From: Bacillus subtilis subsp. subtilis str. 168
GTDB lineage: Bacteria; Bacillota; Bacilli; Bacillales; Bacillaceae
DNA: 64,000 nt
Assembly (NCBI RefSeq): GCF_000009045.1
Contig: NC_000964.3
Span: forward strand, 2,108,001 to 2,172,000
Direction: 5' to 3'
Shown: positions 45,170-64,000 of the stretch, one piece after another
Numbering within the stretch: position 1 is the stretch's first letter
Layout of the letters: each line of letters starts with the position of its first letter
Made by a program: the position numbers and the translations under genes
The notes under the pieces: model-generated
Seen by the model: the letters and a program-made list of their open reading frames with translations, nothing else
Database searches by the model: none
Told to the model about the DNA's origin: nothing

Positions 45170-45170
45170 C

Positions 45171-45356: not shown

Positions 45357-45439
45357 TTTTCTCGCCTCTTTCCCATATGTGCAATATTTAGTTCATTACT
45401 TTTTGCATATTAAACTGTTGTTTGCAATACCCTACTCTT

Positions 45440-45652: not shown

Positions 45653-45717
45653 AATACCTCCACTAATTTTATTTTTATTCTAAATAAAAGACCGATTTTA
45701 TCCTGTTCCTATTTACA

Positions 45718-46080
45718 TTAATCTAGATAAACAACTTCTTTTACAATTGGAAATGGACTACTGATTCTCTCACTTAAATGCAAAACTATTTCAGTTACGT
45801 CTTTTGATGTTGCCACGTGGACTGCCTTTGTAATTTTAAAATTGAATTCATTTTCAATTAAGAGACGTTTACCTTCGGAAAATATATCTATTGAACTAAC
45901 CGCAAAATCACACTTTCCATTTATTCGATACGGATTAAAGCATTTCACAAAATAACATTTATTTAATTCCTTACTGTCTGATAAAACAATGTCAAATTCC
46001 ACATCCCAAACAAACGTGTTAATCTTAGAATGATAAACTAAATCATGGGTAGCTCCTGTATCTTTAAAAATTTCAATCAT
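45718..46080 (-). CDS. yotI: Phage hypothetical protein
   Basis: 120 aa from ATG 46080 behind GGGGAGG; coupled to yotH. Confidence 0.8.
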
Positions 46081-46250
46081 TGAAATAATCCTCCCCAAAT
46101 CACTCCTGCTGCAATAGCAGCTATAAAGACAGAAACAAATTTCATTAAAATGAAAAACTTAATATGCTTTGTTTCGTTCTCAGTTAAGTCAAAATCTGAT
46201 AAAGCGAATAAACCAAACACAATTAACAATATCCAGGCTGTAACAATCAG
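46077..46250 (-). CDS. yotH: Small 2-TM phage membrane protein (probable CTG start)
   Basis: Hydrophobic ORF; GGAGG is positioned for CTG 46250. Confidence 0.65.
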
Positions 46251-46265
46251 GTATCTTTCCTCCAA

Positions 46266-46583
46266 TCATGTTTTATTGTGGCAGATATTAATATATTCCT
46301 TCAGGCTATTAACTGTTGAAATAATACACCCTCGAACCTCTTCAGGATCTTCAAAATCCATTTCATTTTGCAGAACAAATTCATCAAACTCAATCATGGC
46401 AAGAAAGCGATCGTCATTGGGTAGCTTATTAAAATCAATATTCTTTAATCTTGGAATACCTTTTTCCTTTATCCATTCAAGGAAGGGATAATCAACATCA
46501 TTCTTTGCTACTGCGATTTTTAAAAACTCATGAATATCAGAAGAGTTTTCAATATTGAAATAAATCATGAGACTTTCCTTCAT
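46266..46583 (-). CDS. yotG: Phage hypothetical protein
   Basis: 105 aa ORF. Confidence 0.78.
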   Translation of the reverse strand: MKESLMIYFNIENSSDIHEFLKIAVAKNDVDYPFLEWIKEKGIPRLKNIDFNKLPNDDRFLAMIEFDEFVLQNEMDFEDPEEVRGCIISTVNSLKEYINICHNKT

Positions 46584-46595
46584 AAGATCAAATAA

Positions 46596-46673
46596 TCACA
46601 ATAAAGTTTTATCAATGTTATTGTCTGATTTAATTTCAAAGTCTATATTAAACCAGGACATTACGTTCTCCAT
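46596..46673 (-). CDS. yotF: 25-aa phage microprotein or gene remnant
   Basis: MENVMSWFNIDFEIKSDNNIDKTLL behind AAGGAGGG. Confidence 0.55.
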   Translation of the reverse strand: MENVMSWFNIDFEIKSDNNIDKTLL

Positions 46674-46704
46674 TCAATCCCTCCTTGTACATCTAAACTA
46701 TTAC

Positions 46705-46851
46705 TCACTTGACTAACCCCCTTAAGCGTTCGACTTCTGCAACTAACCATTCTGCATAACTGATATGAATTTTTATCACCTTGGTTGATCTAAGTCGCCG
46801 AGACATTACTTCAACAAATTTTTTAACTTCTTCAAATTCAATCTCTTTCAT
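46705..46851 (-). CDS. yotE: 48-aa phage protein
   Basis: MKEIEFEEVKK...WLVAEVERLRGLVK. Confidence 0.65.
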   Translation of the reverse strand: MKEIEFEEVKKFVEVMSRRLRSTKVIKIHISYAEWLVAEVERLRGLVK

Positions 46852-46886
46852 TGAGTTTATCCCACTAAATGAAATCAACGTCTTAA

Positions 46887-47018
46887 TCAATCAAGTATCT
46901 TATTTTTTGGCTTTATATCGATTTCATCACAAGAAGGACATGAAAAATCTGAATTGTCACCTATCCAACTAAAATTGCATTCATTACAAGTCCAATCAAT
47001 TTGTTCTCTACTGTCCAT
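46887..47018 (-). CDS. yotD: 43-aa zinc-ribbon microprotein
   Basis: Hand-translated MDSREQIDWTCNECNFSWIGDNSDFSCPSCDEIDIKPKNKILD; AAAGAGGTG RBS. Confidence 0.75.
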   Translation of the reverse strand: MDSREQIDWTCNECNFSWIGDNSDFSCPSCDEIDIKPKNKILD

Positions 47019-47057
47019 TATAGCTACACCTCTTTCTTAATAAATTCAACATTTTAT

Positions 47058-47249
47058 CTACTTCCAATTGTAGTTCTCCTTTTCTTTCTCTGAATCACCT
47101 ATATGCGAAAGAATCCAATTATGATAACCCTCTTCTCCACAATTAGGGCAATCCATTTCAGATATAACCTTTAATGTGTTTATCATAGGATTTTTAGCAA
47201 ACAAGTGATGATTGCATTTTCTACAAAAAAACACAACTTCATTTTCCAT
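47058..47249 (-). CDS. yotC: 63-aa zinc-ribbon protein
   Basis: CRKC...CPNC. Confidence 0.8.
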   Translation of the reverse strand: MENEVVFFCRKCNHHLFAKNPMINTLKVISEMDCPNCGEEGYHNWILSHIGDSEKEKENYNWK

Positions 47250-47292
47250 GTCTCCCCTTCCCTTCTGTATAAAATTAGAATTTTAATTAAAT

Positions 47293-48120
47293 CTAAATCT
47301 CGAATGTTTTAAGCTCAAACGTTTTATATGAATCTACTTCTTCACCAGGTATCACATTGACACTCGGATAATTATCATAGTCATACGGGTATCCGATACA
47401 ATTCATGTGAAAGCTCGTTCCATCTTTGTCAAACTCAGCTTGTAAATGATCATGTCCACAAACCCAGTGTTTTGCGTTAATGAACGGGACATCAACCATG
47501 TAGCATGTATTAGGCTCAAATGGAGAATAAGGATTGTGAACAGGTGGAACATGTGAGACAAATACATCAACTTGTGTATTTTCAAGCGTTTCATACCAAT
47601 CCATTGATTCTTTCCACATCGCTCTTACACCATCTACTTTGTTATAACCATTAAGCCAAATGTAATTAGAATCGTTAGATACTCCTTTAAAGAAGTCCCA
47701 TCCTTCGATTCCTTTTGGAAGGTACCACATTACATCTCCTGCAAAGACTTTTCCTTTGTATGTTTCAGTTGTCTTAATTAATGGTGTTACATTTTTCATG
47801 TCAGCAGCTTTTTGAATTAGATCATTCAACCTGCCTAACGAGTCTGAGTATTTCCTTTTTTGGCTCTTGCTAAGTAAATAAAGATCATGATTACCATATG
47901 TAAAGTAAACCTTCTCGTATTGCTTTGCTGCCTCATCTAAAACCCATAAAGTTTGTTGATTCCATTCAGTAAAATCGCCGGCAATGACCAATACCTCCCC
48001 ATTACCGTTTGAGATTAACCTATTTACAATTTCTCTTGTTCGCTTCTCCCACTTAATCTGATTTACATTCCAAGGAATCCAATGATTTATATGGAGATCT
48101 GAAACATAATCAATTTTCAT
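47293..48120 (-). CDS. yotB: Calcineurin-like metallophosphoesterase
   Basis: SDLH, AGDF, GNHD, SHVPP, GHDH motifs; ATG 48120 behind AAAGGTGGAG. Confidence 0.88.
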
Positions 48121-48163
48121 TTTGTCTCCACCTTTCTTAATGAAAAATTTATTTCTTTGGCGT

Positions 48164-48192
48164 GTATAAATTAAAATAATCTCTCCATAATA
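48164..48192 (+). promoter_or_regulatory. SigG-type promoter of sspC
   Basis: GTATA-N17-CATAATA. Confidence 0.8.
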
Positions 48193-48238
48193 TGATTCAA
48201 ACAAGCTTGTTTTCATTACACTTTAGGAGATGAATAAG

Positions 48239-48457
48239 ATGGCTCAACAAAGTAGATCAAGATCAAACAACAATAATGATTTACTAATTCCTCAAGCAGC
48301 TTCAGCTATTGAACAAATGAAACTTGAAATAGCTTCTGAGTTTGGTGTTCAATTAGGCGCTGAGACTACATCTCGTGCAAACGGTTCAGTTGGTGGAGAA
48401 ATCACTAAACGTTTAGTTCGCTTAGCTCAACAAAACATGGGCGGTCAATTTCATTAA
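48239..48457 (+). CDS. sspC: Alpha/beta-type small acid-soluble spore protein C
   Basis: [10 protein letters not shown] and [21 protein letters not shown] signature. Confidence 0.97.
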
Positions 48458-48461
48458 TTTA

Positions 48462-48488
48462 TGAGGGGGATAATTCCCCTCTCTTTTT
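48462..48488 (+). terminator. Terminator after sspC
   Basis: GAGGGGG-ATAATT-CCCCTC then a T-run. Confidence 0.8.
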
Positions 48489-48647
48489 TAAGTCTTCTCT
48501 AAATCCATACAGAACTAATGGTATTGTTTCCACCTCTTTTTATGTCACTAACTACTATTATTAAGCTCCTCGACTTGCACTGTGTAATGTCTGTACCATT
48601 TTATTGCCTCCTTTGATTAGCCACTCTATAAATTGCGTTCTCTTCAT

Positions 48648-48713
48648 TTAGAATATATCCAGCGCTCCGTCACAATAAGAACATTTGCCACTACCCTCTT
48701 CACATGTACACAT
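48648..48713 (-). CDS. Putative 21-aa Cys-rich microprotein or remnant MCTCEEGSGKCSYCDGALDIF
   Basis: Hand-translated; GGAGGTG RBS upstream. Confidence 0.45.
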   Translation of the reverse strand: MCTCEEGSGKCSYCDGALDIF

Positions 48714-48756
48714 ATATTTGTCACCTCCAATTTCGCTACCGTCAACTGACAACTCC

Positions 48757-49110
48757 TCAGATATCATTTAATTGTTGTTTCAGCTCAAAGAATTCATCAT
48801 GAAGAAATTTAAATTTATCCTTATTTACGTATGCTTTGTCATCATTAAGATCAAAGAGATCTAAGTACTTTCTTTTATTTCTTTTAATAATTCGTAAAGC
48901 AATAGTGGCACTTACCCACTCTTCACCTTCCAATTGGGTTAAGACTTCACTTAGCTCGAATAACAATTCAAGCTTAGCTTTGTTTTGCTGTGTTTCGAGT
49001 TTTAACAGATCCCTTTGTTTTTCAAGTAAAGTTGTTTCAATTTGGTATTTCTTTTTCTCTAAGGCTGTTATCTGTTCGTTGGTGTTATGTATTTTGTCTC
49101 CTACTTCCAA
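48757..49110 (-). CDS. yosX: Phage coiled-coil protein
   Basis: 117 aa, TTG behind AAGGAGGTG. Confidence 0.82.
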
Positions 49111-49221
49111 TGAATCACCTCCTTAAAGTTTGAATAAAATATTAGTTTTAAAAAATGTATATTTTTTGTTTTTGTATATTAGATAAAAAAACTGTCATTT
49201 CATCATCTTCTATTATTATAT

Positions 49222-49247
49222 TATACATATTATTTGTATTTGTCTAT
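49222..49247 (-). promoter_or_regulatory. Repeated phage promoter element (probably SPBRE), copy 1
   Basis: Minus strand ATAGACAAATACAAATAATATGTATA with a TAGACA -35-like hexamer and TATAAT downstream; 25/26 identical to 62277-62302. Confidence 0.75.
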
Positions 49248-49340
49248 AGTTATTTTATTTTCATTCTTAAATCCATTTACTTAGCCCTGACAAATGCTAA
49301 AAGGGCTTGAGCCGTATAATGAGTGCAGCTAAACACAATT

Positions 49341-49754
49341 TCACATTATATGAAAAATAATACTCAAAGCAAAGATAAGGTTCCCAAAGACATAAGCCAA
49401 ATAAATATACCTACTATGGCTCACTGTTTCGCCCTCCAACACGTCTAAAACCTTAAACATGCTTAGGACTGTGTATATAACTGAAAATGCTGTCCAACAG
49501 AGTATAAGGATATTTTCATGCATAATTAAACCGTTATATGCCAAGGGGATGATTAAAGAACTCCCCTTAAGCAAAGTAAACAGGTAAATTAAATTCTTAT
49601 TTCGTTTCGCATCTTCTGGAGTTGAATTATCAAGCACACTCTTTACTTTTATATACGTATTGCTTTCCCCTCGCATAATCAACCTGACCTCATTAATGTT
49701 TAATACAATTAGATAAGCTGATAGAAATAAAGTTACATATGTTATAGTAAACAT
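49341..49754 (-). CDS. yosW: Phage membrane protein (about 4 TM); start uncertain
   Basis: Hydrophobic ORF followed by a hairpin at about 49283-49308. Confidence 0.72.
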
Positions 49755-49828
49755 CTCCTAATTTTATATTTGTGTTGGGTTGGCTTTTACTCACCCTCAA
49801 ACTCTATACCGTTAATATTTGCTTTTAT

Positions 49829-50119
49829 TCAAATAGCTCCCCCTTTAAAATCATTCACTTGATCAGCAATGTTTTCTTTAATTGTATGTGGCAACTGATC
49901 AATCCCTTTTATAATCCGTTTCTGACCAGTTTTCCTAATTTTTGTAGTCATCTCTTTAAAACACTCTAAAGCAGTATCTGAGATTTCATCATATAGCCCC
50001 TGAATTTTCACTAATACACTTAAATATTCTTCGTCACCTTCTTCAAATAGCGACAACCCTTCTTCAAGTTTGTTGATCTTTTCAACACTCTTTATTATTT
50101 TATTTTTATCCTTAAACAA
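49829..50119 (-). CDS. yosV: Phage hypothetical protein
   Basis: 96 aa, TTG start behind GGTGGGGG. Confidence 0.78.
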   Translation of the reverse strand: MFKDKNKIIKSVEKINKLEEGLSLFEEGDEEYLSVLVKIQGLYDEISDTALECFKEMTTKIRKTGQKRIIKGIDQLPHTIKENIADQVNDFKGGAI

Positions 50120-50332
50120 TTAATCCCCCACCCAGTTTTGGTCATGCATCTTCATGAAGTTAGCTGCTGCCTTCTTGTATCTCAGGTCTTTCTCGTACTC
50201 AGCAACTTGTCTCATATGTTCAATAAATTCATCTTCAAGTCCTTGTAACTGAAGAAACCCAAAGCAAAGACCGTTCCTATAAAGCATGTCGTCATATTTC
50301 GCTTGTAAATCTCTTTCTTTGCTGTTAATAAT
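50120..50332 (-). CDS. yojW: Phage hypothetical protein, 70 aa from ATT (55 aa from internal ATG 50287)
   Basis: Hand-translated ...MLYRNGLCFGFLQLQGLEDEF...NWVGD; AAGGAGG sits before ATT 50332; gene symbol recalled tentatively. Confidence 0.6.
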   Translation of the reverse strand: MINSKERDLQAKYDDMLYRNGLCFGFLQLQGLEDEFIEHMRQVAEYEKDLRYKKAAANFMKMHDQNWVGD

Positions 50333-50438
50333 CTCTTCCTCCTTAAATATTAGATAAAAGTATTCTTTTATTCGGAAATATTTCCAACAAAAATCTTTTA
50401 TGGTAAATTAAAAACAATGTATTTAAAGGAGTGTTAAT

Positions 50439-50684
50439 TTGCGAAAAATATTAAAAATCGTTAGCTTACTGATTCTATTGTTATTATTGGTTTATTCTTT
50501 CTTCAGTCCTAATTCACAATTATTTGTGTTCGTTCAGCTAATCATAATTGCATTTTTGATTGGTTTTGGAATTAACTGTTTTGTTAAAAAAGAACGATAC
50601 CAAGGTACTCTATACTTCGTAATTGCAATATGCAACATTACCATTAATCTTGATAAAATAAACGAGTTAATTCAGAGCATTTAA
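50439..50684 (+). CDS. yosU: Small 3-TM membrane protein, inverted relative to neighbours
   Basis: 81 aa, TTG behind AAAGGAG; hairpin 50696-50727 shared with yosT. Confidence 0.78.
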   Translation: MRKILKIVSLLILLLLLVYSFFSPNSQLFVFVQLIIIAFLIGFGINCFVKKERYQGTLYFVIAICNITINLDKINELIQSI

Positions 50685-50723
50685 CTTATACATATATAGG
50701 AGGTGGGAAATTACCCACCTTCT

Positions 50724-51173
50724 TTATTGGATAGGAACTAATACTTCACATAAGTGATTATCAATCATTTGTGAAGTATATCTCTCTATAATTGGTTCTC
50801 CTCTCATAGTTAGACTATTTTTTTCTATTTCAGAGAAAATATTGCCCCAAAATTCACTTACTGCCTCTTTTGTATGGTCAAGCAAGAAAACAGCGTATTT
50901 CCCTCCAGGTAACTTACCAACTTGAGCTGGTTGCAGCACATTAAAATCTTCATTTAATACAACACCAACATCATAACGGCATTCCTCTTTAGGAGTAATA
51001 CTTGGATCATCTTGTGGAATTCCTAAAATTACAGAGTTATGAAATACACCATTCAACTGTGCCCACTTTTTAAAAGATTCCATTAGTTCTTTGTTTTGCT
51101 TACCACCATACTCTCCAACGTTTCGGAAATAAGCAATCCTTAATTCAGGTAATTCTTCAATAGTTATTTTCAT
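50724..51173 (-). CDS. yosT: GyrI-like / AraC effector-binding domain protein
   Basis: IAYFRNVGEYG, DDPSITPKEECRYD, LPGGKYAVF, IERY. Confidence 0.85.
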   Translation of the reverse strand: MKITIEELPELRIAYFRNVGEYGGKQNKELMESFKKWAQLNGVFHNSVILGIPQDDPSITPKEECRYDVGVVLNEDFNVLQPAQVGKLPGGKYAVFLLDHTKEAVSEFWGNIFSEIEKNSLTMRGEPIIERYTSQMIDNHLCEVLVPIQ

Positions 51174-51267
51174 ATTTTAATCCCCTTTCCTAGAAAAAGG
51201 TAATATGATTAAAAATGTTTTTCAAGATGACTTTTAAAATAATCTATATTTCAAATACAAAATCCAA

Positions 51268-51696
51268 TTACTTCGTTCCAGTTGATCCGTGCCCACCTCG
51301 GTCACCGTTGCCTAGACGGTCTACCTCGATCAAGTCAACTGCCGGCATCTTCTTCATAATTCTGAACTGGCAGATTCGATCCCCTTTCTTAATCTTTGTG
51401 TCACGTAACGCATAAGCAGGAAAGAACCAAAAATCGTTGTCACCCTTATAAGACTCATCGATAACACCCATTGAGTTTGTTTGAATCACACCAAAGTTCT
51501 TATACGTACTCGAACGAGGAACGACATGTGCTTCGTAACCTTCAGGCAATTCCATGGCCACTCCCAATGGAACAAGTTTAAATTCATCTTTTTTGATCGC
51601 TACATCTTCAGCTGCACGAAGATCAATCCAATCACCTTGCTCCATTTTGTTAATTCTTGTTTGTGTTTCATCTAAGTATTTGATTTTAATTTGCAT
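51268..51696 (-). CDS. yosS: Trimeric dUTPase
   Basis: [30 protein letters not shown] motifs. Confidence 0.95.
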
Positions 51697-51741
51697 TATG
51701 TATTAGCTCCTTTTAATTCAAGTTTGTTTAAAATTACCCTT

Positions 51742-51984
51742 TTATCGTAATTCCTTTAGTAACTCATCAAGTTCATTAGGCTTAAAACCAACACTTCGGT
51801 TTACTTCTTCTCCCTGATCACTCAGCAGAATGGTTACCGGTACTCCCATGACACCAAATCTTGCTGCTACTTCTGGTTCCTGTGTAACGTCAACAGTCTC
51901 AAATTGAATATTTACTTGTTCTAAGTAATTGGACACCATTTTACATGGATTGCAATTAGGCTGCTCTAATTTAATTAATCTCAT
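51742..51984 (-). CDS. yosR: Thioredoxin/NrdH-like redoxin
   Basis: CNPC active site, GVP cis-Pro; ATG 51984 overlaps the nrdF stop. Confidence 0.9.
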
Positions 51985-53778
51985 TGAATACATCCTTTCT
52001 CGGTAAAAATGAAATCTGAATCCTTTAAAGGCTCCACTGTTGCTTTTTTGTATCCATTCCCTTTAGTTGAAAAGAAGTCATGGGATTTAGTCTTAGTGTT
52101 CAAACCATTGATAACAATTGGATTAACATCCTCTTCTTCAAACCAATGATCAAAGCCCAGATTGTTTAAAGCTTTATTTGCGTTGTATCTGATGAATTTC
52201 TTTACATCTGGAGCTAATCCAACCTGATCATAGACATCTTCTGTATACTCCAATTCATTTTCGTAAAGTTCCTGCAGTAAGTTTAAAGCCCATGCGTACA
52301 GTTCTTTTTGCTTCTGTGGCGTTTGCTTCTTATAAATCTCTTGAGCTAACAATCCTACATATACGCCATGTATCGCTTCGTCTCTAATACCCTTAGTTCA
52401 ACCGAGTTCGCTACTTTCGGTTCGTTGCTCTGTCGCAACCGCCTTACGTTACCGTAAGGAGCAGACTATATCATCATCCCTGTAGGATGCCTCCCGTTTC
52501 GATTTAAGGGGTTCTCACCCACGCCAATAGCTTGCGCCCTACTCGTTTTGCGGAATTTCGCCGCCTATGCGATAGTCGTTGAACGTTCTATGCGATCCCA
52601 TAAAGTCTTCCATCTTCTTTTATGTCGAATTAGACTAACGTAACGAGGATGAAGGCTGTATTTTTCACCAGCTTCAACATTGTTCATTCCAGCAATCAAA
52701 TCATAGATTAAATTTGTTGCCTCCATATTAGTGAGCTTTGACATTGAATTACTTTCTCCAGGTTGTCCTGACATTAATCCAATTTTCATTGCATGTAGAG
52801 TATTTTCTTTAGGTGTAACTATTTCTAAGTTCCGAACGTGGTTGTTTAGTTTATTTCCATCTATGTGGTTTACAAACATTCCTTTTGGTATATCATAAAT
52901 AAAATATTTTGCGACTAACCTATGTACTAAATAGTTCTGTGTTCCTTTTTTCGGATGCGTGTATCCTATCATTTCATAGCCATGTGGAGTAATAAATGTC
53001 TTTCTTGGTTTCTTTAATTTTTTTGATATGATAACTCCCGTTTCCGTTATCCACCAAGGTGCTTCTTCGACTTCTTTCCTTATCATTTTCACCTCCTTTG
53101 GGTTCGCATAGCTTCGCTGCTGATTGTCCTAATAAGGATTTTCCAGCAATTAGAGAGGTTCACATTTGCCGTTGCCGACAAAAGGGACTATTAAATAATC
53201 AGGTTAATGATCTCTCCACTTTGCATTAACTTTCCTTGTCCATAAAAATAAAGTGGGTAATAAAACCCTGAGTAGAAAAGAAAACTCTCCAGGAACACAG
53301 ATGCAACCATTCCTTTAAATAAAGAAATTTCATCGTTTTTCTTGATTGTTTTATAGACTGAAACAATTGTTCTAGCTTTCTTTTGAAGAAACCTATTGTT
53401 TTTCACCCATTCAAAGACTTCATTGATCTGCTCGGTTGGAGCCAATGTTAGAAAGATGTTGCTGTAAGACTTTGCATGAACAGCATTTTCCATCATGGCC
53501 ATGAAATTTAAAACTGCCTTTCTTTGATGTCCATCTACGTGTTCAGCCACGATCGGCATCCCCGTATTCCCCTGCTCTGTATCAAGAAGCGTAAGTCCGG
53601 CCAGTACCTTCATATAAGTGTCCTGCTCATTTTTTCCGAGGTACTTCCATGTGAGGAGATCGCCGTTTAAAGCAATCTCTTCCGGAAGCCAGAACTGTTT
53701 CACGTTTTGGTTATAGAACATTTGGGTAAAATCGTCTTCATGCTTTGACCAGTTTGCTGCGTCATAAATTTTTGTCAA
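51981..53778 (-). CDS. nrdF: Class Ib ribonucleotide reductase beta subunit, spliced: join(53778-53198, 52389-51981), 329 aa
   Basis: Joined exons read [17 protein letters not shown]; [25 protein letters not shown]. Confidence 0.94.
52390..53197 (-). mobile_element. Group I intron (808 bp) in phage nrdF
   Basis: 5' exon ends in U, intron ends in G; R-like CAACGACTA and S-like GATATAGTC elements; removal restores the frame. Confidence 0.92.
52565..53086 (-). CDS. yosQ: Intron-encoded HNH homing endonuclease
   Basis: VHRLVA...[17 protein letters not shown]; ATG 53086 behind AAAGGAGGTG. Confidence 0.92.
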
Positions 53779-53892
53779 TTAATCATGTCCTTTCAATTGA
53801 AATATTTTTTTCCGAAAAAAATGCAGTGAATTTAAAAGCTGAATTGACAGACTCCTATATTACTGTCAAACATTCGAAAGGAATGAAAGACA

Positions 53893-54111
53893 GTGAATTT
53901 TTTAGATAACCTTATATCTTTGTTAGAGAGTACAGTCATTTCAACTGGATGGTTGTGTGATAGGCTTTTATCATGTTTAATCGAATATATTTTGAAGCTT
54001 ATATTTGGTTTACTTTGTAATGCTCTTATGAGAAAATTTAACAAAATTAAGTGCAAACGACGTCCGGGAGATCCTGTTAATTTTGAACCAAAACGTAAAC
54101 GTACCTATTAA
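53893..54111 (+). CDS. Putative 72-aa protein antisense to the nrdE-nrdF spacer
   Basis: GTG behind AAAGGAATG; hydrophobic middle and basic tail; stop overlaps the nrdE stop in TTAA. Confidence 0.45.
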   Translation: MNFLDNLISLLESTVISTGWLCDRLLSCLIEYILKLIFGLLCNALMRKFNKIKCKRRPGDPVNFEPKRKRTY

Positions 54112-57614: not shown

Positions 57615-57972
57615 TAAGTTGTACCTCCTGAATGATTTTCTGTAGATCTTGTTTCGTTCCACTAAGTTCAAACTTTAATAACAATGGTGTGTGGAACTTA
57701 GCTGAAAGCTTGTCTCCAGCTAAACCATAGTTATCACCCCAAACCTTGTTACCACTAACAGCAACTCCTCTAATTTTATTTTTATTCTTATTGATAAAAC
57801 TCAAAGTCCTTTCAGGTACTTCCCCAAAGCCTATCGTATATGTAATATGTATGAATTCTTGATTGATGATCGTATCATCAGTTATTTCAATTGCCTCAAC
57901 GTCAAACTCTTGTTGCAGCGCTTTGACAAACCTTTTTACATTTCCTGTTTTACTCTCATATGTAATGATCAC
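57577..57972 (-). CDS. nrdI: NrdI flavodoxin
   Basis: YESKTGNV, TYTIGFG, SGNKVWG, KFELSG. Confidence 0.94.
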   Translation of the reverse strand: MIITYESKTGNVKRFVKALQQEFDVEAIEITDDTIINQEFIHITYTIGFGEVPERTLSFINKNKNKIRGVAVSGNKVWGDNYGLAGDKLSAKFHTPLLLKFELSGTKQDLQKIIQEVQLIDKHNTKLDQAQ

Positions 57973-58325
57973 TAATCGTTATAAGCCCCTGTAATTAATT
58001 TTGTAGTCACTGTTTCAGCTTCATTTTCAGCGTAATTGAATGCTTCTGATATCTCACGATTAATGTCGCCCATTTCCATGTAGCCCTGTGCCATACTTTC
58101 ATATAAGGAACTTTTCTTAACTGGAACGTAATCATCTAGATTCTTTTCTAATTCAACAAATTGATTTCCTTGTTGGTCAGTTGCAATAATCTCTCCTTTT
58201 AATACAGGGAAAGATTGCCCATCAGCTAAATGAATATGAGTGTTCTCAGTGGCTACTGTAAAGTTAATAATGTTCTTCTTTTTTACATATGGTTGAGTTG
58301 GATCAATACGTCTAGCTGCCCCCAT
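57972..58325 (-). CDS. yosL: Phage hypothetical protein
   Basis: 117 aa from ATG 58325 behind AAGGAG (ORF track extends to 58382). Confidence 0.78.
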   Translation of the reverse strand: MGAARRIDPTQPYVKKKNIINFTVATENTHIHLADGQSFPVLKGEIIATDQQGNQFVELEKNLDDYVPVKKSSLYESMAQGYMEMGDINREISEAFNYAENEAETVTTKLITGAYND

Positions 58326-58412
58326 TTTACATCTCCTTATTTTTTGTATTTTGAATAAAGCTGTGATTTTATCTAGATTCAAGCAGTACCTATTCGTCCT
58401 CCTTAGGAATTG

Positions 58413-58613
58413 TCACTCTTCTTCGATCGTCCATCCGTTTAATCTTGCGTACTTTAATTTTCTTGAATATCTACGCTTCCACTCGTCCCAGTCCTTCTTC
58501 TCTTGACCTGACGTTAGTGAGCCTCTGTACTGATTTTGTCTTCTTTTCTTGTCTAGCTCTAGTATATCGCCAACCCATCTAGGAACTGACGGCCTATAAT
58601 TACTTTGCGACAT
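58413..58613 (-). CDS. yosK: Phage hypothetical protein
   Basis: 66 aa, GGAGGA RBS. Confidence 0.78.
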   Translation of the reverse strand: MSQSNYRPSVPRWVGDILELDKKRRQNQYRGSLTSGQEKKDWDEWKRRYSRKLKYARLNGWTIEEE

Positions 58614-58657
58614 CTATTCGTCCTCCAATTGTTTCTGTATAAATTTCATTGTGTCTT

Positions 58658-58852
58658 CTATTGTTTCGGCCACCCTTCTCCAAGGAGTTTTTTAGCCTCT
58701 TCAACATCTGTGAATCTTTCAATCTTGTGTCTATAATCATCGATCCACCGGTAAACACATACTGCATTTTCTTCAACTTTCATGACGGTGTACTGCTGCA
58801 TAGGATCTTCTAGAAGATGAAGTTTCTGATCTTTATAAAACCCTTGAATCAT
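58658..58852 (-). CDS. yosJ: Phage hypothetical protein
   Basis: 64 aa, GAGGAGG RBS. Confidence 0.78.
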   Translation of the reverse strand: MIQGFYKDQKLHLLEDPMQQYTVMKVEENAVCVYRWIDDYRHKIERFTDVEEAKKLLGEGWPKQ

Positions 58853-58872
58853 ATAATATCCTCCTCTTATTT

Positions 58873-59007
58873 TTATTGAATTTCTCTTACTTCATGCGGT
58901 ACTCCGCTTTCTTCTTGAGCATATACTGCATCATTATGAGCCTCAATTGCATCATCATAAGTATTAACAAGTGATCCCATACAATAAAGTCCATATTTCA
59001 TTTTCAT
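58873..59007 (-). CDS. yosI: 44-aa phage protein
   Basis: Hand-translated MKMKYGLYCMGSLVNTYDDAIEAHNDAVYAQEESGVPHEVREIQ. Confidence 0.7.
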   Translation of the reverse strand: MKMKYGLYCMGSLVNTYDDAIEAHNDAVYAQEESGVPHEVREIQ

Positions 59008-59038
59008 CTTCATCATCCTCTTAATTTATTTTTATTCT

Positions 59039-59509
59039 TTAAAGTAAACTGCCATCAATAAGCAATACCATCTCTTCGTCATTAGAAATCTCCTCAAGAA
59101 CCTGTTTAAACGGCATGAGCTCTTTATCTTCTCCTGGCGCCCTTCCATGTTGTATCGCCGCATAAACTTGCCCAACTTCTGTCATTTCATCACTTAACTC
59201 TCCATCATCATCATCTGTAACAGTATCTGTATACAGTTCCATTGCCTTTTCTTTTGTATAAGCCTTAATCAATGCATAATAGGGGTCAAACACTTCAAAA
59301 TACTTCATAATGGGTTTTTCAACTTCCAATTCCTCAACGTAATCGCCTTTAATTTTCACATCATCAACTCCGTTTTCGAGCAAATGATCTACCATATCCT
59401 TGCCTAGTTGTTCTAACGCTGCTCCTTGAACAGATGGACTTTCGTCATTAAATCCTTCATGAGCGTAACAAGTTGCTTTTATTTCAAAAACTGCTGCTTT
59501 AATTCCCAT
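59039..59509 (-). CDS. yosH: Acidic phage hypothetical protein
   Basis: 156 aa, AAAAGGAG RBS. Confidence 0.8.
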   Translation of the reverse strand: MGIKAAVFEIKATCYAHEGFNDESPSVQGAALEQLGKDMVDHLLENGVDDVKIKGDYVEELEVEKPIMKYFEVFDPYYALIKAYTKEKAMELYTDTVTDDDDGELSDEMTEVGQVYAAIQHGRAPGEDKELMPFKQVLEEISNDEEMVLLIDGSLL

Positions 59510-59569
59510 AGCACAATGCTCCTTTTAATATTTATTTTTTAGATTTAGAATCCACTAATCTCTTTAAAA

Positions 59570-59932
59570 TCATCCTTTTATGGAGAACGAATGAATACCA
59601 GGTACACCCACAACGCTCTGGAATGGATTGAGCACATTAAATTCTATTTCTACCGCCAAATCTCTGTCTGAGTTCATTTGAATTCTTTCGATTTTCACAT
59701 TAACTTCGCTTGTTTCATCTTCTAGACTAGTCATTTTCATTTTATAAGTGCCCTTAGATACACCGCCTAGTTCAACCCATTTATAAACCAATAAATCATT
59801 ACTAATCCTTACTGTGATTTTATCTTCGTTTTCAGTTGCCTCTACATTTTTGTAATGAAGAACCATTCTTGTTTCATTTGGTAAATGTTTATTCAGTGTT
59901 TCTTCATATACGGCAATTTCTTTTAAGATCAT
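59570..59932 (-). CDS. yosG: Phage hypothetical protein
   Basis: 120 aa, AAAAGGAG RBS; bracketed by two palindromic sites. Confidence 0.8.
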   Translation of the reverse strand: MILKEIAVYEETLNKHLPNETRMVLHYKNVEATENEDKITVRISNDLLVYKWVELGGVSKGTYKMKMTSLEDETSEVNVKIERIQMNSDRDLAVEIEFNVLNPFQSVVGVPGIHSFSIKG

Positions 59933-59974
59933 ATCTAACTCTCCTTTTGAAAATTTCGGCTTAAAATAAAACTT

Positions 59975-60100
59975 TTATTTAGACTTATTGTCGTTTTGCA
60001 AAATGGTGTCAGCAGCTAAAGATGTAGCTTTCATTTCGCCGACAATTTTACCAGTTGATTTCTTTTTGAAAATAATCTTTGCAGCATTATCATCACTCAT
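59975..60100 (-). CDS. yosF: 41-aa phage protein
   Basis: Hand-translated MSDDNAAKIIFKKKSTGKIVGEMKATSLAADTILQNDNKSK; AAGGAGG RBS. Confidence 0.7.
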   Translation of the reverse strand: MSDDNAAKIIFKKKSTGKIVGEMKATSLAADTILQNDNKSK

Positions 60101-60113
60101 CTTGAGTGCCTCC

Positions 60114-60461
60114 TTAGATAAACAATGTGCTAACATATAGAACAATCAATGCGAAAGTTGAATGAAATAAAGACTTACCGGCTTTCTTGAAAATGTTCTC
60201 ATCTTTTTCCTGATCTGACCGTTTTACACCTTTGACAAATACATTGAGTAAAACACCAATAACAAATGCATGAGGTAAAGTGACATGGACATTTTGAATA
60301 TTGTATGTATCAATAAGCAAAGGATTTAACACATGATTCAATCCGTAATAAACAATTAGTGACATAGTCAACGCTTCAACAAAAATAAGTAATCCAACTA
60401 CAATTAACGAACCTGACCCCATAAAGAATCCGCTCCAAATATCTTTTGTATCCTTATTCAA
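60114..60461 (-). CDS. yosE: Phage membrane protein (about 3 TM)
   Basis: 115 aa hydrophobic ORF, AAAGGAG RBS. Confidence 0.8.
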   Translation of the reverse strand: MNKDTKDIWSGFFMGSGSLIVVGLLIFVEALTMSLIVYYGLNHVLNPLLIDTYNIQNVHVTLPHAFVIGVLLNVFVKGVKRSDQEKDENIFKKAGKSLFHSTFALIVLYVSTLFI

Positions 60462-60475
60462 TAAATATCTCTCCT

Positions 60476-60871
60476 TTAGTCTTTTTTAGTTAGCCTCTGC
60501 CACCAGGAAGTTTTTATCTGTCTTTGATTTTGAGTATCATTGTTTTTTGCTTTCTTATTATTGTGTTCTTCGCATTCCTTCAAGCTTTTTTCATCTATAA
60601 TTGTCTTAATAACTCTGTCTGTTTGATATGTCCACTCGTTATGTATGTTTCGCTGCCTGTCAGTCACTATGACATATTCATTAAGTCCAGGGATATAAAC
60701 TTTACCTCCAATTTCTATAGGCTCAATATCTATATAGCCCTCGAAGATTGGTTCAGTACGAGTTACCTTACACACTGGCTGAGTAATCCACCTCTCTGTG
60801 CCTGGGGCACGGTGTGAGTAATACCTTTCTTTCATAACCAATCCTTCAATCGTTGCTTTATGGCGTCCCAC
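60476..60871 (-). CDS. yosD: Phage hypothetical protein
   Basis: 131 aa, GTG behind AAGGAGGTG. Confidence 0.8.
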   Translation of the reverse strand: MGRHKATIEGLVMKERYYSHRAPGTERWITQPVCKVTRTEPIFEGYIDIEPIEIGGKVYIPGLNEYVIVTDRQRNIHNEWTYQTDRVIKTIIDEKSLKECEEHNNKKAKNNDTQNQRQIKTSWWQRLTKKD

Positions 60872-60909
60872 TTATTCACCTCCTTATAAGTCTCTTTAAA
60901 AATTGAATT

Positions 60910-61452
60910 TTAATCTAAATGCTCCATTACAATTTTTAGATAATCTTTATAGTCAGTAGCAACCACACTGTCTCCATTAACAAGCTGTTCAGTTTTAACT
61001 CCAAAGAACCACCTGTCACCTATCCATTGACGACCAGTCATGTTGTTTAACCCCAGCTCATCATGAGACCTAAATGGATACACTTCTTCAATTTGCTCAA
61101 TCATAGCTTTTATTTCTTTAAAGTATTTAGATCGTTTTTTGAAAGCATAGAATCCGTCTACTTGATTTTTAACAATGTCATTTTTAAATATTTCATACGC
61201 TTCTGTTCCTTCGTAGACTCCAAAGTACTCAGAGTGATAAAACGAGAAGCCTTCCTTGACTCCATACTTTTCTTCGAATTTATCAAAGAAAGAGTTTATA
61301 TCCTCTTTGCGTTTCTTCTCAGATTTATACCAGTCACTTTCCTGTTTAACTTCGTAAATCGGTGCATCTAAGGTTTGCATACTCTCATCTCCCCTAATAT
61401 TTCTTTCTGCTTGTTTTAATTTGTCGTATACTGCGCTTGCCCGGGAAATCAT
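60910..61452 (-). CDS. yosC: Phage hypothetical protein
   Basis: 180 aa ORF. Confidence 0.78.
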   Translation of the reverse strand: MISRASAVYDKLKQAERNIRGDESMQTLDAPIYEVKQESDWYKSEKKRKEDINSFFDKFEEKYGVKEGFSFYHSEYFGVYEGTEAYEIFKNDIVKNQVDGFYAFKKRSKYFKEIKAMIEQIEEVYPFRSHDELGLNNMTGRQWIGDRWFFGVKTEQLVNGDSVVATDYKDYLKIVMEHLD

Positions 61453-61496
61453 TAGTATTTCCTTTGATCATATTTCCCCATCTATATCTTTCCTTT

Positions 61497-61676
61497 TTAT
61501 AGATCCACCAACATCAGACCGTCTAGTCCATATACCTTGTCTCTTTCAGTTAACTTTCCGTTTTTTCTCATTGTCTTCAATGCATTTTCTGCTTGTTTAA
61601 GATTTGAGTAAATATGTGGGTGGTAACCATAGAGATATTTCCCTTCACTCTTTGCAGCAATTACAAACATGTTCAT
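61497..61676 (-). CDS. yosB: 59-aa phage protein
   Basis: Hand-translated MNMFVIAAKSEGKYLYGYHPHIYSNLKQAE...MLVDL; AAGGAG RBS. Confidence 0.72.
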   Translation of the reverse strand: MNMFVIAAKSEGKYLYGYHPHIYSNLKQAENALKTMRKNGKLTERDKVYGLDGLMLVDL

Positions 61677-61806
61677 TCATCAACTCTCCTTATTCAACTC
61701 TTAAATTTAGACAAAGTCTTCATTTTTTCTTTTTTAGACTGAAATCTATGTCGAATTTTTAACCTTTGCCATACCATATACTATCCTTACTAAAGGAGGT
61801 GGCAAT

Positions 61807-61926
61807 ATGGGATTCTACAGCGGATATTCTGGTGGATACTCTGGCGGCGGATACGGAAGCAGCTTCGTCTTGATCGTTGTGTTATTCATCCTATTGATCA
61901 TTGTTGGTGCTACATTCCTATACTAA
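61807..61926 (+). CDS. yosA: YjcZ/SscA-family 39-aa membrane microprotein, inverted moron
   Basis: MGFYSGYSGGYSGGGYGSSFVLIVVLFILLIIVGATFLY; AAAGGAGGTG RBS; own terminator at about 61969-62001. Confidence 0.85.
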   Translation: MGFYSGYSGGYSGGGYGSSFVLIVVLFILLIIVGATFLY

Positions 61927-62029
61927 TCTCAGAGTAAATCCAGAGCCTTTGAATCACCTCCCTGTTCGATAGACGCCATAAAACTTCTTATGGCGTTTTT
62001 TATTTTTACATTTGTATAAAAGGAATATT

Positions 62030-62242
62030 TTATCCTCTTATTTTGTATTTGATATTTAATCCTAAATGTTCTAATGTCTTCTTAACACTTAAATTGCTGC
62101 ATTCATTTTTCACTTTATCGGAATAACCCTTTGCACAACTTTCACAACAGTTGAAGTCTACATAAGTTTTTTCATCGCTGATCCTAAGACAAATTGTTTT
62201 TCCGCTTATGTACTCCTTACAGATGTCACATATATGATTCAT
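62030..62242 (-). CDS. yorZ: Cys-rich (zinc-finger-like) phage protein
   Basis: CDIC...CCESC; ATG 62242 behind AAGGAG. Confidence 0.78.
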   Translation of the reverse strand: MNHICDICKEYISGKTICLRISDEKTYVDFNCCESCAKGYSDKVKNECSNLSVKKTLEHLGLNIKYKIRG

Positions 62243-62276
62243 TAACACTCTCCTTCGCCTCAACGTAAATTTATTA

Positions 62277-62302
62277 TATACATATTATTTGTTTTTGTCT
62301 AT
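62277..62302 (-). promoter_or_regulatory. Repeated phage promoter element (probably SPBRE), copy 2
   Basis: Minus strand TAGACA-N17-TATAAT embedded in ATAGACAAAAACAAATAATATGTATA. Confidence 0.75.
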
Positions 62303-62308
62303 CGGTTT

Positions 62309-62491
62309 TTAAATAATTTCTTTAATATTTTTCAGCTTTGCAAAAACAGACATTATATCTTTATCACACCGCTCCCAAACACGCTTTTCTTCAGGCCTTA
62401 AAGTGTTTTCTAAATAAACATAAAGCTTATCCAATACTCCTTCAGCAGCATCTATATCATCAATTACAAGATCCCTAACAATATCCTTAAT
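62309..62491 (-). CDS. yorY: 60-aa phage protein, ATT start
   Basis: Hand-translated [28 protein letters not shown]...KEII behind GGGAGAGGG. Confidence 0.68.
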
Positions 62492-62503
62492 GATACCCTC
62501 TCC

Positions 62504-62731
62504 CTATGAAAATATGGTTATTGCTTTTCCATTGTCATTTTTTATGTATGGGGAATATTTTCGGTCTAGGCAATTCTTCGACTTTCCTTCTCCCAGGCTT
62601 ACATTATAAATATCCCCTACCTCATAAACTTCGTATGCTTGTTCTTTTGCATGTTCAGGTGATAGCGCCTCAATAACTAGAGACGCATTTTCACCTTTGC
62701 TGTCTTTACACCTTACATAATACTTTTTCAA
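62504..62731 (-). CDS. yorX: Phage hypothetical protein
   Basis: 75 aa ORF. Confidence 0.75.
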   Translation of the reverse strand: MKKYYVRCKDSKGENASLVIEALSPEHAKEQAYEVYEVGDIYNVSLGEGKSKNCLDRKYSPYIKNDNGKAITIFS

Positions 62732-62770
62732 TAAACATCCCTTTATCCTTTCATTTTTTCTCGAAACAAT

Positions 62771-63142
62771 TTAATGAATCAAGCCTTGATATGTATTTGG
62801 TTTAATATTGTGTAGATTGTTTAGGTTAGTTAACCGCTCGATTTCCTTACTCATCGCATAACATTGATCAACATAAAATTTCTTTGGCATAATCACAAAC
62901 TGGCCATCTTTAAATCCTTCCGCACCGGCTTCTTGCATTGCTGCTGGAAAGATATCAATTAGACTACCTTTCTTAAAGCTCTCAATATACTCATCTACTG
63001 AAATAGTGTGCAAAACCTTAGCTAATACTCCATTAGTCTTTTCATCGTTATGTACGTAAATGCTTTGTGTATGTGGTTCAATAACTACAAAATCAAGAGC
63101 GTTTACCAAGTCAATTTTTTCTTGATCAGTTAGCATATTCAC
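62771..63142 (-). CDS. yorW: Phage hypothetical protein
   Basis: About 121-123 aa, AAAAGGAG RBS, coupled to yorV. Confidence 0.78.
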   Translation of the reverse strand: MNMLTDQEKIDLVNALDFVVIEPHTQSIYVHNDEKTNGVLAKVLHTISVDEYIESFKKGSLIDIFPAAMQEAGAEGFKDGQFVIMPKKFYVDQCYAMSKEIERLTNLNNLHNIKPNTYQGLIH

Positions 63143-63357
63143 TCTCCTTTTAAATACGACTTGAAAAACTCACTTAAGTTATCAGCCATAGCTGCAGCAA
63201 CTTCAGAAAAGTATTTATGTCTTTTCTCCTCTGATTTCAAAAACTCAACTGTCGTTTCTGCAATTTCTTTAATCTTGTCTTCTTTGATATTTCCATTCCT
63301 AACACGCTCTTTAATCTCCTCTGTCTCTTTTTTTAGGGACTCTGGGTAACTATCCAA
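63139..63357 (-). CDS. yorV: Phage hypothetical protein
   Basis: 72 aa from TTG 63357 behind GAGGAG. Confidence 0.75.
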   Translation of the reverse strand: MDSYPESLKKETEEIKERVRNGNIKEDKIKEIAETTVEFLKSEEKRHKYFSEVAAAMADNLSEFFKSYLKGE

Positions 63358-63400
63358 TCGATCCACTCCTCTTATTTTATATTTGTTTAAAAGACAAATT

Positions 63401-64000
63401 TTATTCAGATTCTTTATTAACATATGTATGTATTAATTCTTGAAATATAGACTCAAGCACACTAACTGTAATTGAATTACCGGCTTGCTTGTATAATTGT
63501 GAGTTACTTATTCCTGCTGCAAAAGCTTTTTCAAAATCTTCGTCATCAAATGCTTGGAGTCTCCAACATTCTAATGGAGAGAGCTTTCTAATTTTATATT
63601 TTGGGTATTCTCCGATTGCTACACCATGTCGATCAATTGTATTAACCGTGAAAGCCGGTTCTCCGTTTTCTTTAAAACGTCTTCCATTCTGTCTTTTCTC
63701 TTCTCTTTCTGGCGTTAACACTGCCCTTACTTCTTTCTGCTTTTCTGCGATTTTAGGTTCTCTGTGACCGCCGCCCATTGTAGTTAATGTCGGTGAAAGT
63801 CCTTCAGGCGAGTAAACTCTTTTGATGGCATCGTGACCTTTTAAATCCACGTGTCCCACCATTAACGGCTCCCTTACTTCTTGTTTTTGTAGCGGTGCGG
63901 TTCCTAGTTGCTCAACAAGTTTCTTCGTCTTTTCTTCATTTAAGTAATACTTCTCATCAACAAAATCCTCAAGAATTTCTCTCAACCTCTTTGTGACAGT
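63401..64000 (-). CDS. mtbP: Multispecific C5-cytosine DNA methyltransferase, C-terminal part (N-terminus outside the window)
   Basis: Motifs IX/X RKLSPLECWRLQAF and QLYKQAGNSI preceded by SPTLTT and PAFTVNT target-recognition segments. Confidence 0.9.
   Translation of the reverse strand, partial: TVTKRLREILEDFVDEKYYLNEEKTKKLVEQLGTAPLQKQEVREPLMVGHVDLKGHDAIKRVYSPEGLSPTLTTMGGGHREPKIAEKQKEVRAVLTPEREEKRQNGRRFKENGEPAFTVNTIDRHGVAIGEYPKYKIRKLSPLECWRLQAFDDEDFEKAFAAGISNSQLYKQAGNSITVSVLESIFQELIHTYVNKESE

Follow-up and report, generated by a model that had tools for sequence, protein, structure and literature searches.

Palindromes with locus-specific cores at gene boundaries of SPbeta-like Bacillus phages: sites of module exchange and possible targets of a Cre-like recombinase

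Why does one short palindrome, WTAAAA-N6-TTTTAW, recur at one gene boundary after another in a prophage of Bacillus subtilis subsp. subtilis str. 168? The DNA analyzed is a stretch of 64,000 nucleotides (NC_000964.3, positions 2,108,001 to 2,172,000 of the forward strand), hereafter called the window. Its positions 45000-64000 are 100% identical to the right arm of the phage SPbeta (SPBc2, NC_001884.1, 114447-133447, reverse strand; coordinates of the phage genome are given below as positions of the SPbeta record) and carry on the minus strand the genes yotN to mtbP. In a preliminary description of this DNA the palindrome was likened to recombinase sites, and it was proposed that SPbeta-like phages gain, lose and shuffle accessory genes through it, in the manner of an integron or a pdif array. 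The comparisons reported here identify the palindromes as module-exchange sites with locus-specific cores. Whether modules are exchanged by crossing-over between sites of equal core, through one of the candidate Cre-like recombinases YopP or YomM, is in our judgement evenly balanced.

All ten exact copies previously listed were found at their coordinates, within 45.6-63.4 kb of the window, and each of them sits at a gene boundary; no copy was found in the 43 kb of host DNA at window positions 1-43000. Dinucleotide shuffles give an expectation of 0.26 copies, and none of 100 shuffles reached ten. Two more copies, at 47040 and 58355, carry one mismatch each over the 10 core arm positions, as described. 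The two copies that had been called degenerate differ in quality: that at 51220 is probably a decayed site, while that at 61711 is doubtful, being indistinguishable from background and probably no member of the family. When the scan was extended to the whole phage genome, SPbeta was found to contain 33 copies, about 1.2 being expected, against none in the host DNA, an enrichment far stronger than the rough estimate first made.

The spacing between the arms is strict. TAAAA-Nk-TTTTA occurs 34 times in SPbeta at k=6 and 0-5 times at each other value of k between 0 and 20, and the controls, in which the arms were placed in reversed order or as direct repeats, gave no spacing peak in the same genome. 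Some 30 of the 34 lie between genes or overlap a stop codon, although intergenic DNA makes up 13.8% of the genome. Of 21 codirectional gene pairs separated by 40-59 bp, 8 contain an exact copy and 4 more a copy with one or two mismatches; decayed copies are visible elsewhere. A pattern of this kind could in principle arise by composition, since the arms consist of A and T only and the G+C content of the phage arm is 35%: in A+T-rich intergenic DNA, a stop codon and an A-run followed by a T-run would resemble a site. The restriction to one spacing speaks against composition, and so do Markov models (orders 1, 3 and 5) fitted to this very intergenic sequence, extended by 6 nt per side (20.4 kb in all). 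These predict 0.7-1.0 copies, where 29 are seen, with 0-1 copies at other spacings. The spacing scan and the intergenic-trained models refute a chance origin; the motif is also missing from host DNA and from the other B. subtilis phages checked, and we give this explanation practically no credit.

Alignment of 31 sites, oriented by transcription, produced the consensus T(-4)-Y-W-R-R-ATAAAA / K-N4-M / TTTTAW-W-Y-A-R-A(+23), which spans 28 bp and is arranged as 11-6-11. This is the layout of tyrosine-recombinase core sites such as lox, dif and FRT, in which inverted arms of 9-13 bp surround a centre of 6-8 bp, and the likeness noticed in the preliminary description is borne out in this respect. 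The outer pair -3/+22 is also mirror-symmetric, as Y and R. The stop codons of the upstream genes fall where they had been placed, in the left arm for yosR, yosF, yosC, yorZ and mtbP, within the spacer in the case of yosG, and immediately next to the site in that of yotC.

Oriented sites following stop codons might be signals at the RNA level, i.e. intercistronic hairpins acting in mRNA processing or stability, in translational coupling or in termination. The sites do follow the direction of transcription, and have a polarity of their own: position 1 is A in 27 of the 31, whereas its mirror position 18 is T in just 15 (p=0.002). At 11 sites the TAA of the left arm is the stop codon of the upstream gene, in fixed register, and many start codons lie 19-35 nt downstream; overall, start codons are found from 1 to more than 100 nt downstream, a distance more variable than that of the upstream stop, and some sites (record 116414 and 92393) end operons, with no gene downstream. 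The predicted hairpins are made of A-U pairs only and are weak, with a mean minimum free energy of -2.9 kcal/mol for the sense strand, -2.7 for the antisense and -1.3 for shuffled sequences. At variable paired positions, pairs of the G-U type (5) are no more frequent than those of the A-C type (7), and the arms are conserved as sequence, without covariation. Hairpins that are weak and equal on both strands, together with arms that do not covary, suggest recognition of the double-stranded DNA by a dimeric protein rather than an RNA structure. A search of window positions 44000-64000 against Rfam 15 gave a group I intron as its sole match and no family at the sites. The conserved cores and combinatorial flanks described below would also be left unexplained by an RNA signal. 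The hairpin reading was rejected on these grounds, and the RNA processing signal that the preliminary description had offered as an alternative is very unlikely.

A scan for sigma-A promoter-like and terminator-like sequences gave no match coinciding with any site (promoter-like matches were 58, against 73.8 in shuffles), and identity with either signal was rejected. The sites occur in early and late operons alike. A further candidate was SPBRE, the other dispersed intergenic repeat of SPbeta, which is bound by a protein of tyrosine-recombinase fold, the repressor MrpR (YopR), at about 10 promoters; the peaks obtained with MrpR by chromatin affinity precipitation and sequencing (ChAP-seq) are at SPBRE promoter regions only (PMC10516654). 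Since the palindromes differ from these peaks in both location and number, they are neither SPBRE nor MrpR-binding sites.

The distribution of the motif was analyzed in related phages and prophages. Copies with spacing 6 number 6-13 per homologous arm in phi3T, Goe11, Goe13, SPR and Goe14, and 9 per 21 kb in IMG/VR prophages encoding YopP. The SPbeta-like prophages of B. atrophaeus, B. altitudinis and B. pumilus, where YopP is only 45-65% identical, contain 7-11 per 21 kb. In the loci from these three species, an unbiased scan of all 5-mer palindromes by spacing ranks TAAAA/6 first. The motif is present in the SPbeta-like prophages of four Bacillus species. No spacing-6 copy was found in phi105 (39 kb), in 41 kb of phiNIT1 or in the 43 kb of host DNA. 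This absence makes a factor of the phage lineage likelier than a host factor, and recognition by a host factor was rejected as an explanation. The motif is confined to SPbeta-like phages; in a scan of IMG/VR with the extended consensus, chance occurrences in A+T-rich contigs predominate among the matches listed. Viral contigs provided YopP relatives of 97-100% identity only, the distant ones being obtained by protein search.

Within SPbeta all 34 cores are distinct, and identical 18-mers recur from one phage to another. It had been remarked that all the spacers differ, which is true within one genome; they are not arbitrary, each being conserved between phages. In the B. altitudinis and B. pumilus loci only 7-10% of the DNA aligns to SPbeta, yet 4-5 of their 7-9 sites share a core with it, where chance would give 0.2-0.35 (p from 2e-4 to 4e-6). 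These shared sites are isolated islands of identity or fall exactly at the end of an alignment, and the open reading frames (ORFs) beside them are mostly without a blastp match. The order of the cores is colinear in SPbeta and 20 related loci (...TCGTAC, TCATTC, GAAGTG, TAATCA, GAATCC, TAGGAA, [aimR-yopR], TGTAAG, GATGCA, GTAAAA, TTGAAG, AGACTG, GGATTA, TCGTGA, GATAGT...), and the distances between them are highly variable, that from GATGCA to GTAAAA ranging from 812 to 3366 bp. Substitutions at orthologous sites amount to about 6 events over the 6 core positions (e.g. TAGGAA/TTGGAA/TAAGAA), and to 30 events of single substitution over the 10 arm positions. The cores form a scaffold of positional addresses along the genome. 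Being locus-specific and shared in a conserved order, they make exchange possible between equal cores at corresponding positions, and the dilemma posed in the preliminary description, that a recombinase would have to tolerate heterologous cores, falls away.

The sequences flanking the sites were compared in 26 sequences, containing 286 exact sites with 63 different cores. Left and right flanks are reassorted around identical 18-mers, which is the pattern expected of recombinase core sites. Core AGACTG, present in 19 genomes, has 10 types of upstream and 8 types of downstream flank, and GTAAAA has 7 of each; GATCAA is combined with 4 upstream and 2 downstream flanks, and TTCAAT, GGATGA and TTCTAA are similarly combinatorial. 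The control, a copy inside the yopR coding sequence, has a single upstream and a single downstream type in 17 genomes. At the window site with core GTTTTA (59961), upstream (U) and downstream (D) flanks are combined as U1-D1 in SPbeta, U1-D2 in SPR, U2-D2 in phi3T and U2-D3 in Goe11, Goe13 and Goe14. The choice between A and T at position 1 tracks the upstream flank, and that at position 18 the downstream flank. In pairs of sites with the same core and anchored upstream, the other flank was unrelated in 145 cases and related in 62; in those anchored downstream the figures were 128 and 52, numbers that include related genomes and rest on ungapped clustering at 70%, and hence indicate the pattern, not how many events produced it. 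Category counts alone were used, the ungapped per-position divergence profile being blurred by register shifts of 1 nt.

Two other comparisons agree with this picture. BLAST alignments between arms repeatedly stop within a few bases of the site edges, and among the islands of at least 20 bp that an unbiased scan of exact matches revealed where flanks are otherwise unrelated, motif sites form the principal class. The sites are nodes where SPbeta-like phages have exchanged gene modules. Short-homology recombination would yield the same flank pattern. The proposal that genes are shuffled at these sites is supported in so far as homology starts and stops there and flanks are combinatorial; where breakpoints between relatives were examined, homology edges fall at the 18-mers, and junctions are also common where the motif is missing. 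The sites of the window are listed in Table 1, together with the genes of SPbeta considered below.

Table 1. Palindromic sites of the window, with their state in related phages, and SPbeta genes discussed in the text. Numbers of flank types are given as upstream/downstream; RBS, ribosome-binding site.
Position	Strand	Feature	Sequence, transcript strand	Related phages and remarks
window 45684..45701	minus	exact, between yotI and yotJ; followed by A-rich leader and RBS	ATAAAA-TCGGTC-TTTTAT	5 phages, 4 upstream contexts; downstream conservation only through the RBS
window 47040..47057	minus	one mismatch, abutting yotC stop	ATAAAA-TGTTGA-ATTTAT	exact version with unchanged core present in Goe13
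window 47269..47286	minus	exact, between yotB and yotC	TTAAAA-TTCTAA-TTTTAT	7 genomes, B. altitudinis and B. pumilus prophages among them; flank types 5/5
window 49134..49151	minus	exact, yosX leader, downstream of promoter-like site	TTAAAA-CTAATA-TTTTAT	5 phages; flank types 3/2; Goe13 gene inserted 3 nt past the site
window 50354..50371	minus	exact, upstream of yosV	ATAAAA-GAATAC-TTTTAT	homology of Goe11, SPR and Goe14 stops in or at the site; flank types 2/4
window 51220..51237	minus	degenerate, between yosS and yosT, 2 arm mismatches		weak
window 51728..51745	minus	exact, overlaps yosR stop	ATAAAA-GGGTAA-TTTTAA	kept in 6 of 6 arms, immediate flanks unchanged; insertion in Goe13 and SPR at the RBS just downstream
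window 58355..58372	minus	one mismatch, between yosK and yosL	ATAAAA-TCACAG-CTTTAT	33-bp identity island between SPbeta and Goe11, flanks otherwise different
window 59564..59581	minus	exact, yosG stop TGA within core	ATAAAA-GGATGA-TTTTAA	flank types 3/3; phi3T allele GGAAGA
window 59961..59978	minus	exact, overlaps yosF stop	ATAAAA-GTTTTA-TTTTAA	see text
window 60896..60913	minus	exact, overlaps yosC stop	TTAAAA-TTCAAT-TTTTAA	flank types 3/2; position 18 goes with downstream flank
window 61711..61728	minus	described earlier as degenerate, 3 arm mismatches		
window 62016..62033	minus	exact, overlaps yorZ stop	ATAAAA-TATTCC-TTTTAT	stem_loop only in the 1999 record
window 63387..63404	minus	exact, overlaps mtbP stop	ATAAAA-TTTGTC-TTTTAA	Goe11, Goe13 and Goe14: same core after unrelated gene, downstream yorV block retained
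record 78691-79767		yopP		
record 40301-41302		yomM		
record 79874-81256		yopQ		between YopP and MrpR; DndB-like

Integron-like or pdif-like cassettes, in which circles of the form site-RBS-ORF-site would be inserted at any site with tolerance of heterologous cores, fit these data poorly. Like attC, the sites are located at the 3' ends of ORFs, and one case of the expected form was found: in locus L134 an upstream flank (U) is followed by a TAATTG site, a gene and a TAGGAA site, where elsewhere U is followed by the TAGGAA site directly, the break being placed after ATAAAATA. This case shows that exchange between different sites can occur. It is the only comparison of site-gene-site with site alone; the cores are colinear across phages instead of scrambled, none is repeated within the genome, most intervals between nodes hold several genes, and no platform of the attI/Pc kind accompanies them. 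In addition, no second site accompanies either of two clean insertions of a single gene beside sites of the window. Insertion of cassettes is not the general rule that had been supposed, and as an explanation of the sites it is unlikely.

Junctions formed in the laboratory between SPbeta and phi3Ts have been catalogued in an evolution experiment (Dragos et al., bioRxiv 10.1101/2020.05.06.055103, Suppl. Table 1). Coordinates were calibrated on alignments, chromosome 2153648 corresponding to position 1618, and 2157793 to position 5763, of the arm sequence L001 (offset 2152030). The SPbeta end of the junction called N1, chromosome 2170033, is thereby L001 18003 and window 62033, with which the 62016-62033 site ends. 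At N1 the identity with phi3Ts consists of just those 18 bp, the phi3Ts copy of the site being at 107396-107413. Junction 7, reported with a homology of "30 bp", ends at SPbeta record 69415, close to the site at 69423-69440, which has 21 identical bases in common with its phi3Ts twin at 62422-62439. Both junctions without kb-scale homology map to motif sites, for which the chance is about 6e-5 with 30-bp windows. Two motif sites have served as junctions in vivo.

Integration of SPbeta is carried out by the serine recombinase SprA (YokA). As stated in the preliminary description, the phage encodes tyrosine-recombinase-fold proteins outside the window; there are three of them, MrpR, YopP and YomM. 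MrpR retains 3 of 7 catalytic residues. YopP matches the Pfam family Phage_integrase (E=1.8e-10) and has a SAM-like N-domain; the best fold matches of its model, which has a predicted local distance difference test score (pLDDT) of 68, are Cre-loxP complexes. The predicted model confirms the fold class, not the geometry of the active site. Residues R178, K206, H268, K271, H295 and Y304 of YopP do not vary among homologs with as little as 45% identity, and the same set is found in YomM. The gene yopP is a core gene, transcribed in lysogens along with yopQ and mrpR (10.1101/2021.11.22.469490).

In the mechanism that we favor, a dimer of a phage protein would bind the two identical arms, and two genomes carrying the same core would cross over inside the site. 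Since the cores of any one genome differ, the phage would be protected from deleting its own genes. Two orphan tyrosine recombinases of the Cre-like kind are candidates for the enzyme: YopP, which is expressed in the lysogen, and YomM. The process may be likened to the action of Cre on heterospecific lox sites, or to engineered recombinase-mediated cassette exchange. In its most specific form, the proposal is that of a natural cassette exchange, in which YopP or YomM would act on over 60 heterospecific, lox-like 28-bp sites, and co-infecting phages and prophages would swap modules in register; this is put forward tentatively, with slightly less than an even chance of being right.

A number of observations weigh against exchange by a dedicated recombinase. 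In both YopP and YomM the HxxR box of tyrosine recombinases reads HxxK, and the YopP model is poor at the HxxK...Y region, with pLDDT below 50 for residues 263-323. In vaccinia topoisomerase IB a Lys at the equivalent Arg keeps substantial activity; by this precedent HxxK would be compatible with catalysis. The polarity between positions 1 and 18 is unforeseen for a purely symmetric site. Flank types, clustered without gaps and with close relatives included, overstate the number of independent events. Among arm boundaries with gaps of at least 25 bp, junctions are found at 13 of 13 with the motif and at 12 of 16 without (p=0.11), a comparison of low power since nearly all arm boundaries are junctions; their frequency where the motif is missing implies that it is not required for mosaicism. 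The two single-gene insertions of Goe13 mentioned above, beside the sites at 49134 and 51728 (L010 6226-6524 and 11038-11454), are bounded by an 8-bp direct repeat, ttcagaat, and by a 14-bp RBS repeat, aaaaggagctaata, respectively, and represent microhomology-mediated gene gain, independent of the palindrome.

The laboratory junctions, too, count partly on this side. Of the 16 numbered ones 15 lie in ordinary long homology, N1 being a further junction, reported as "non-homologous" (10.1101/2020.05.06.055103), and the phi3Ts coordinate reported for N1 lies 14 nt off the phi3Ts copy of the site. Motif sites make up about half of the short islands of identity between SPbeta and phi3T; the position of N1 and 7 on them is not improbable under a short-homology model, and these junctions do not tell whether a dedicated recombinase or recombination at short homologies produced them. 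The Hyb2 junction in the arm falls in a 1.4-kb stretch devoid of informative differences, and therefore says nothing on the use of the motif.

These points lend weight to the main rival explanation, according to which the palindrome is the binding site of a dimeric phage protein with a regulatory or architectural role, and the exchange of modules is a by-product. The protein could block or silence transcription where genes end, as at the stoperators of mycobacteriophage L5, or be the HU-like YonN, which is among the other candidate binders encoded by SPbeta, together with several small helix-turn-helix proteins. As the only conserved patches of 18-30 bp, the sites would then draw general or phage recombination (Sak4-like YorG, RecA), as has been proposed for the PeSLs (promoter-early stem-loops) of T4-type phages. 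Arms identical at all sites, a fixed place after stop codons, and a presence in early and late operons in the direction of transcription are in keeping with such a protein; other short repeats, e.g. RBSs, also host junctions, and homology accounts for the 15 numbered ones. SPbeta has, besides YonN and YorG, a RecJ-like YorK, and MrpR is an example, in SPbeta itself, of the recombinase fold as a pure DNA binder (PMC10516654). What a plain operator leaves unexplained is the conservation of cores between phages whose proteins are about 45% identical, with core substitutions rarer per position than those of the arms. Moreover, the ChAP-seq peaks of MrpR are at SPBRE promoters, not at these sites (PMC10516654), and no promoter or terminator signal coincides with them. 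On balance, the binding-site explanation deserves considerable credit, although clearly less than even.

The equal-core reading can be further assessed by comparison with known systems. As in Cre/loxP and its heterospecific lox variants, the SPbeta sites have two identical inverted arms around a short asymmetric core and, if the model is right, recombination restricted to equal cores would let differently cored segments be swapped without self-deletion. The differences are that loxP is a single site of 13-8-13, whereas SPbeta has dozens of natural 11-6-11 sites per genome, and that the candidate recombinases YopP and YomM have HxxK, not HxxR. In P1, the single lox site serves cyclisation and dimer resolution, not module exchange. 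Xer/dif sites and those of the pdif modules of Acinetobacter plasmids (reportedly described by Blackwell and Hall in 2017) also span 28 bp, with arms of 11 bp around a centre of 6 bp, and modules bounded by such sites occur in varied contexts. Xer/dif and pdif sites have distinct XerC and XerD arms, depend on host recombinases and, for pdif, alternate in orientation; in the SPbeta sites both arms follow the same consensus, and the sites belong to one phage lineage and are absent from flanking host DNA, which sets them apart from pdif. In integrons, promoterless ORFs carry at their 3' ends the attC sites, imperfect palindromes that are conserved on the outside and variable at the centre, often with the stop codon inside. 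The attC sites measure 57-141 bp, against a fixed 18/28 bp here, and the SPbeta sites lack an attI/Pc platform, an IntI and the regular alternation of site and ORF, being present in only about 40-57% of codirectional gaps of 40-59 bp, with colinear cores.

The stoperators of L5 (cluster A) reportedly come, according to Brown et al. 1997, in about 30 copies, spread over short intergenic gaps of operons both early and late; they lie close to stop codons and follow the direction of transcription. They are asymmetric 13-mers under the immunity repressor, with no locus-specific core; the immunity repressor of SPbeta, MrpR, binds SPBRE at promoters instead (PMC10516654). The PeSLs of T4-type phages are intergenic repeats of hyperplastic regions, at which inter-phage indels and replacements start and end, shuffling modules (PMC2839356). 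The SPbeta sites likewise coincide with boundaries of indels and replacements. PeSLs are composites of a sigma70 promoter and a terminator and act via homology, whereas the SPbeta sites bear neither signature nor a stable hairpin, and are short palindromes with locus-specific cores in a fixed order.

The mosaicism of phages is commonly explained by illegitimate recombination at random places followed by selection, or by homologous recombination between genes held in common. Dedicated junctions are said to have been proposed since 1980, and Botstein's modular theory of phage evolution postulated "linker" sequences; to our knowledge dedicated junctions have rarely been documented, PeSLs being the best case. 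Full-text literature searches returned no description of the present motif, a prior mention in the 1999 genome paper remaining possible, and the parts of an SPbeta review and of a comparative paper covered by targeted terms hold no mention of it. A model prophage carries dense, lineage-wide palindromes at the borders of its modules, with cores kept across species-level divergence. If exchange is driven by a phage recombinase, the sites would provide a dedicated molecular basis for Botstein's linkers, account for the fast reshuffling of accessory, counter-defence and sporulation-related genes in SPbeta-like phages, predict where hybrids form, and offer ready-made orthogonal recombination sites for Bacillus genome engineering. 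If they are operators merely drawing crossovers, the conservation of cores across species would still need explaining.

Some additional features were noticed in the course of the analysis. A second dispersed intergenic repeat is an A-rich leader, (T)TAGAATAAAAATAAAAT(T/A)AG(T)GGAGG, running into the RBS. It is found at window positions 45666, 50097 and 57773 (minus strand) and at record positions 90640, 95087, 120662, 128338 and 132769, often directly after a palindrome site, and it also forms short islands of identity between phages. The sequence ATAAAAATAAAAT has 5 sense and 0 antisense copies in SPbeta, and 0 copies in the 43 kb of host DNA. The group I intron recognized by Rfam is located in bnrdE (56689-56904, minus strand, 92 bits); a second intron, in bnrdF, is below the gathering score. 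The best sigma-A-like promoter of the arm, TAGACA-17-TATAAT (11/12; window 62301-62273, minus strand), is upstream of yorZ, where an MrpR operator SPBRE has been reported (PMC10516654).

Only two members of the family figure in the 1999 annotation, where they are marked as stem_loops (SPbeta record 2622-2651 and 116406-116431); it also has two "palindrome" features, TTGTAATGCATTACAA and GTAAACCATATGGTTTAC (record 77856-77871 and 82394-82411), which are unrelated to this motif family. The exact copy at record 82016-82033 (core TTAACT) lies inside the mrpR/yopR coding sequence, does not vary, like its flanks, in 17 genomes, and may be either a coincidence of the coding sequence or a functional site. 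Finally, yorM (record 110881-111597, outside the window, annotated with an ATT start) contains an internal exact palindrome at record 111028, followed by the RBS-like sequence aagaggtga, a combination suggesting a misannotated start or two genes.

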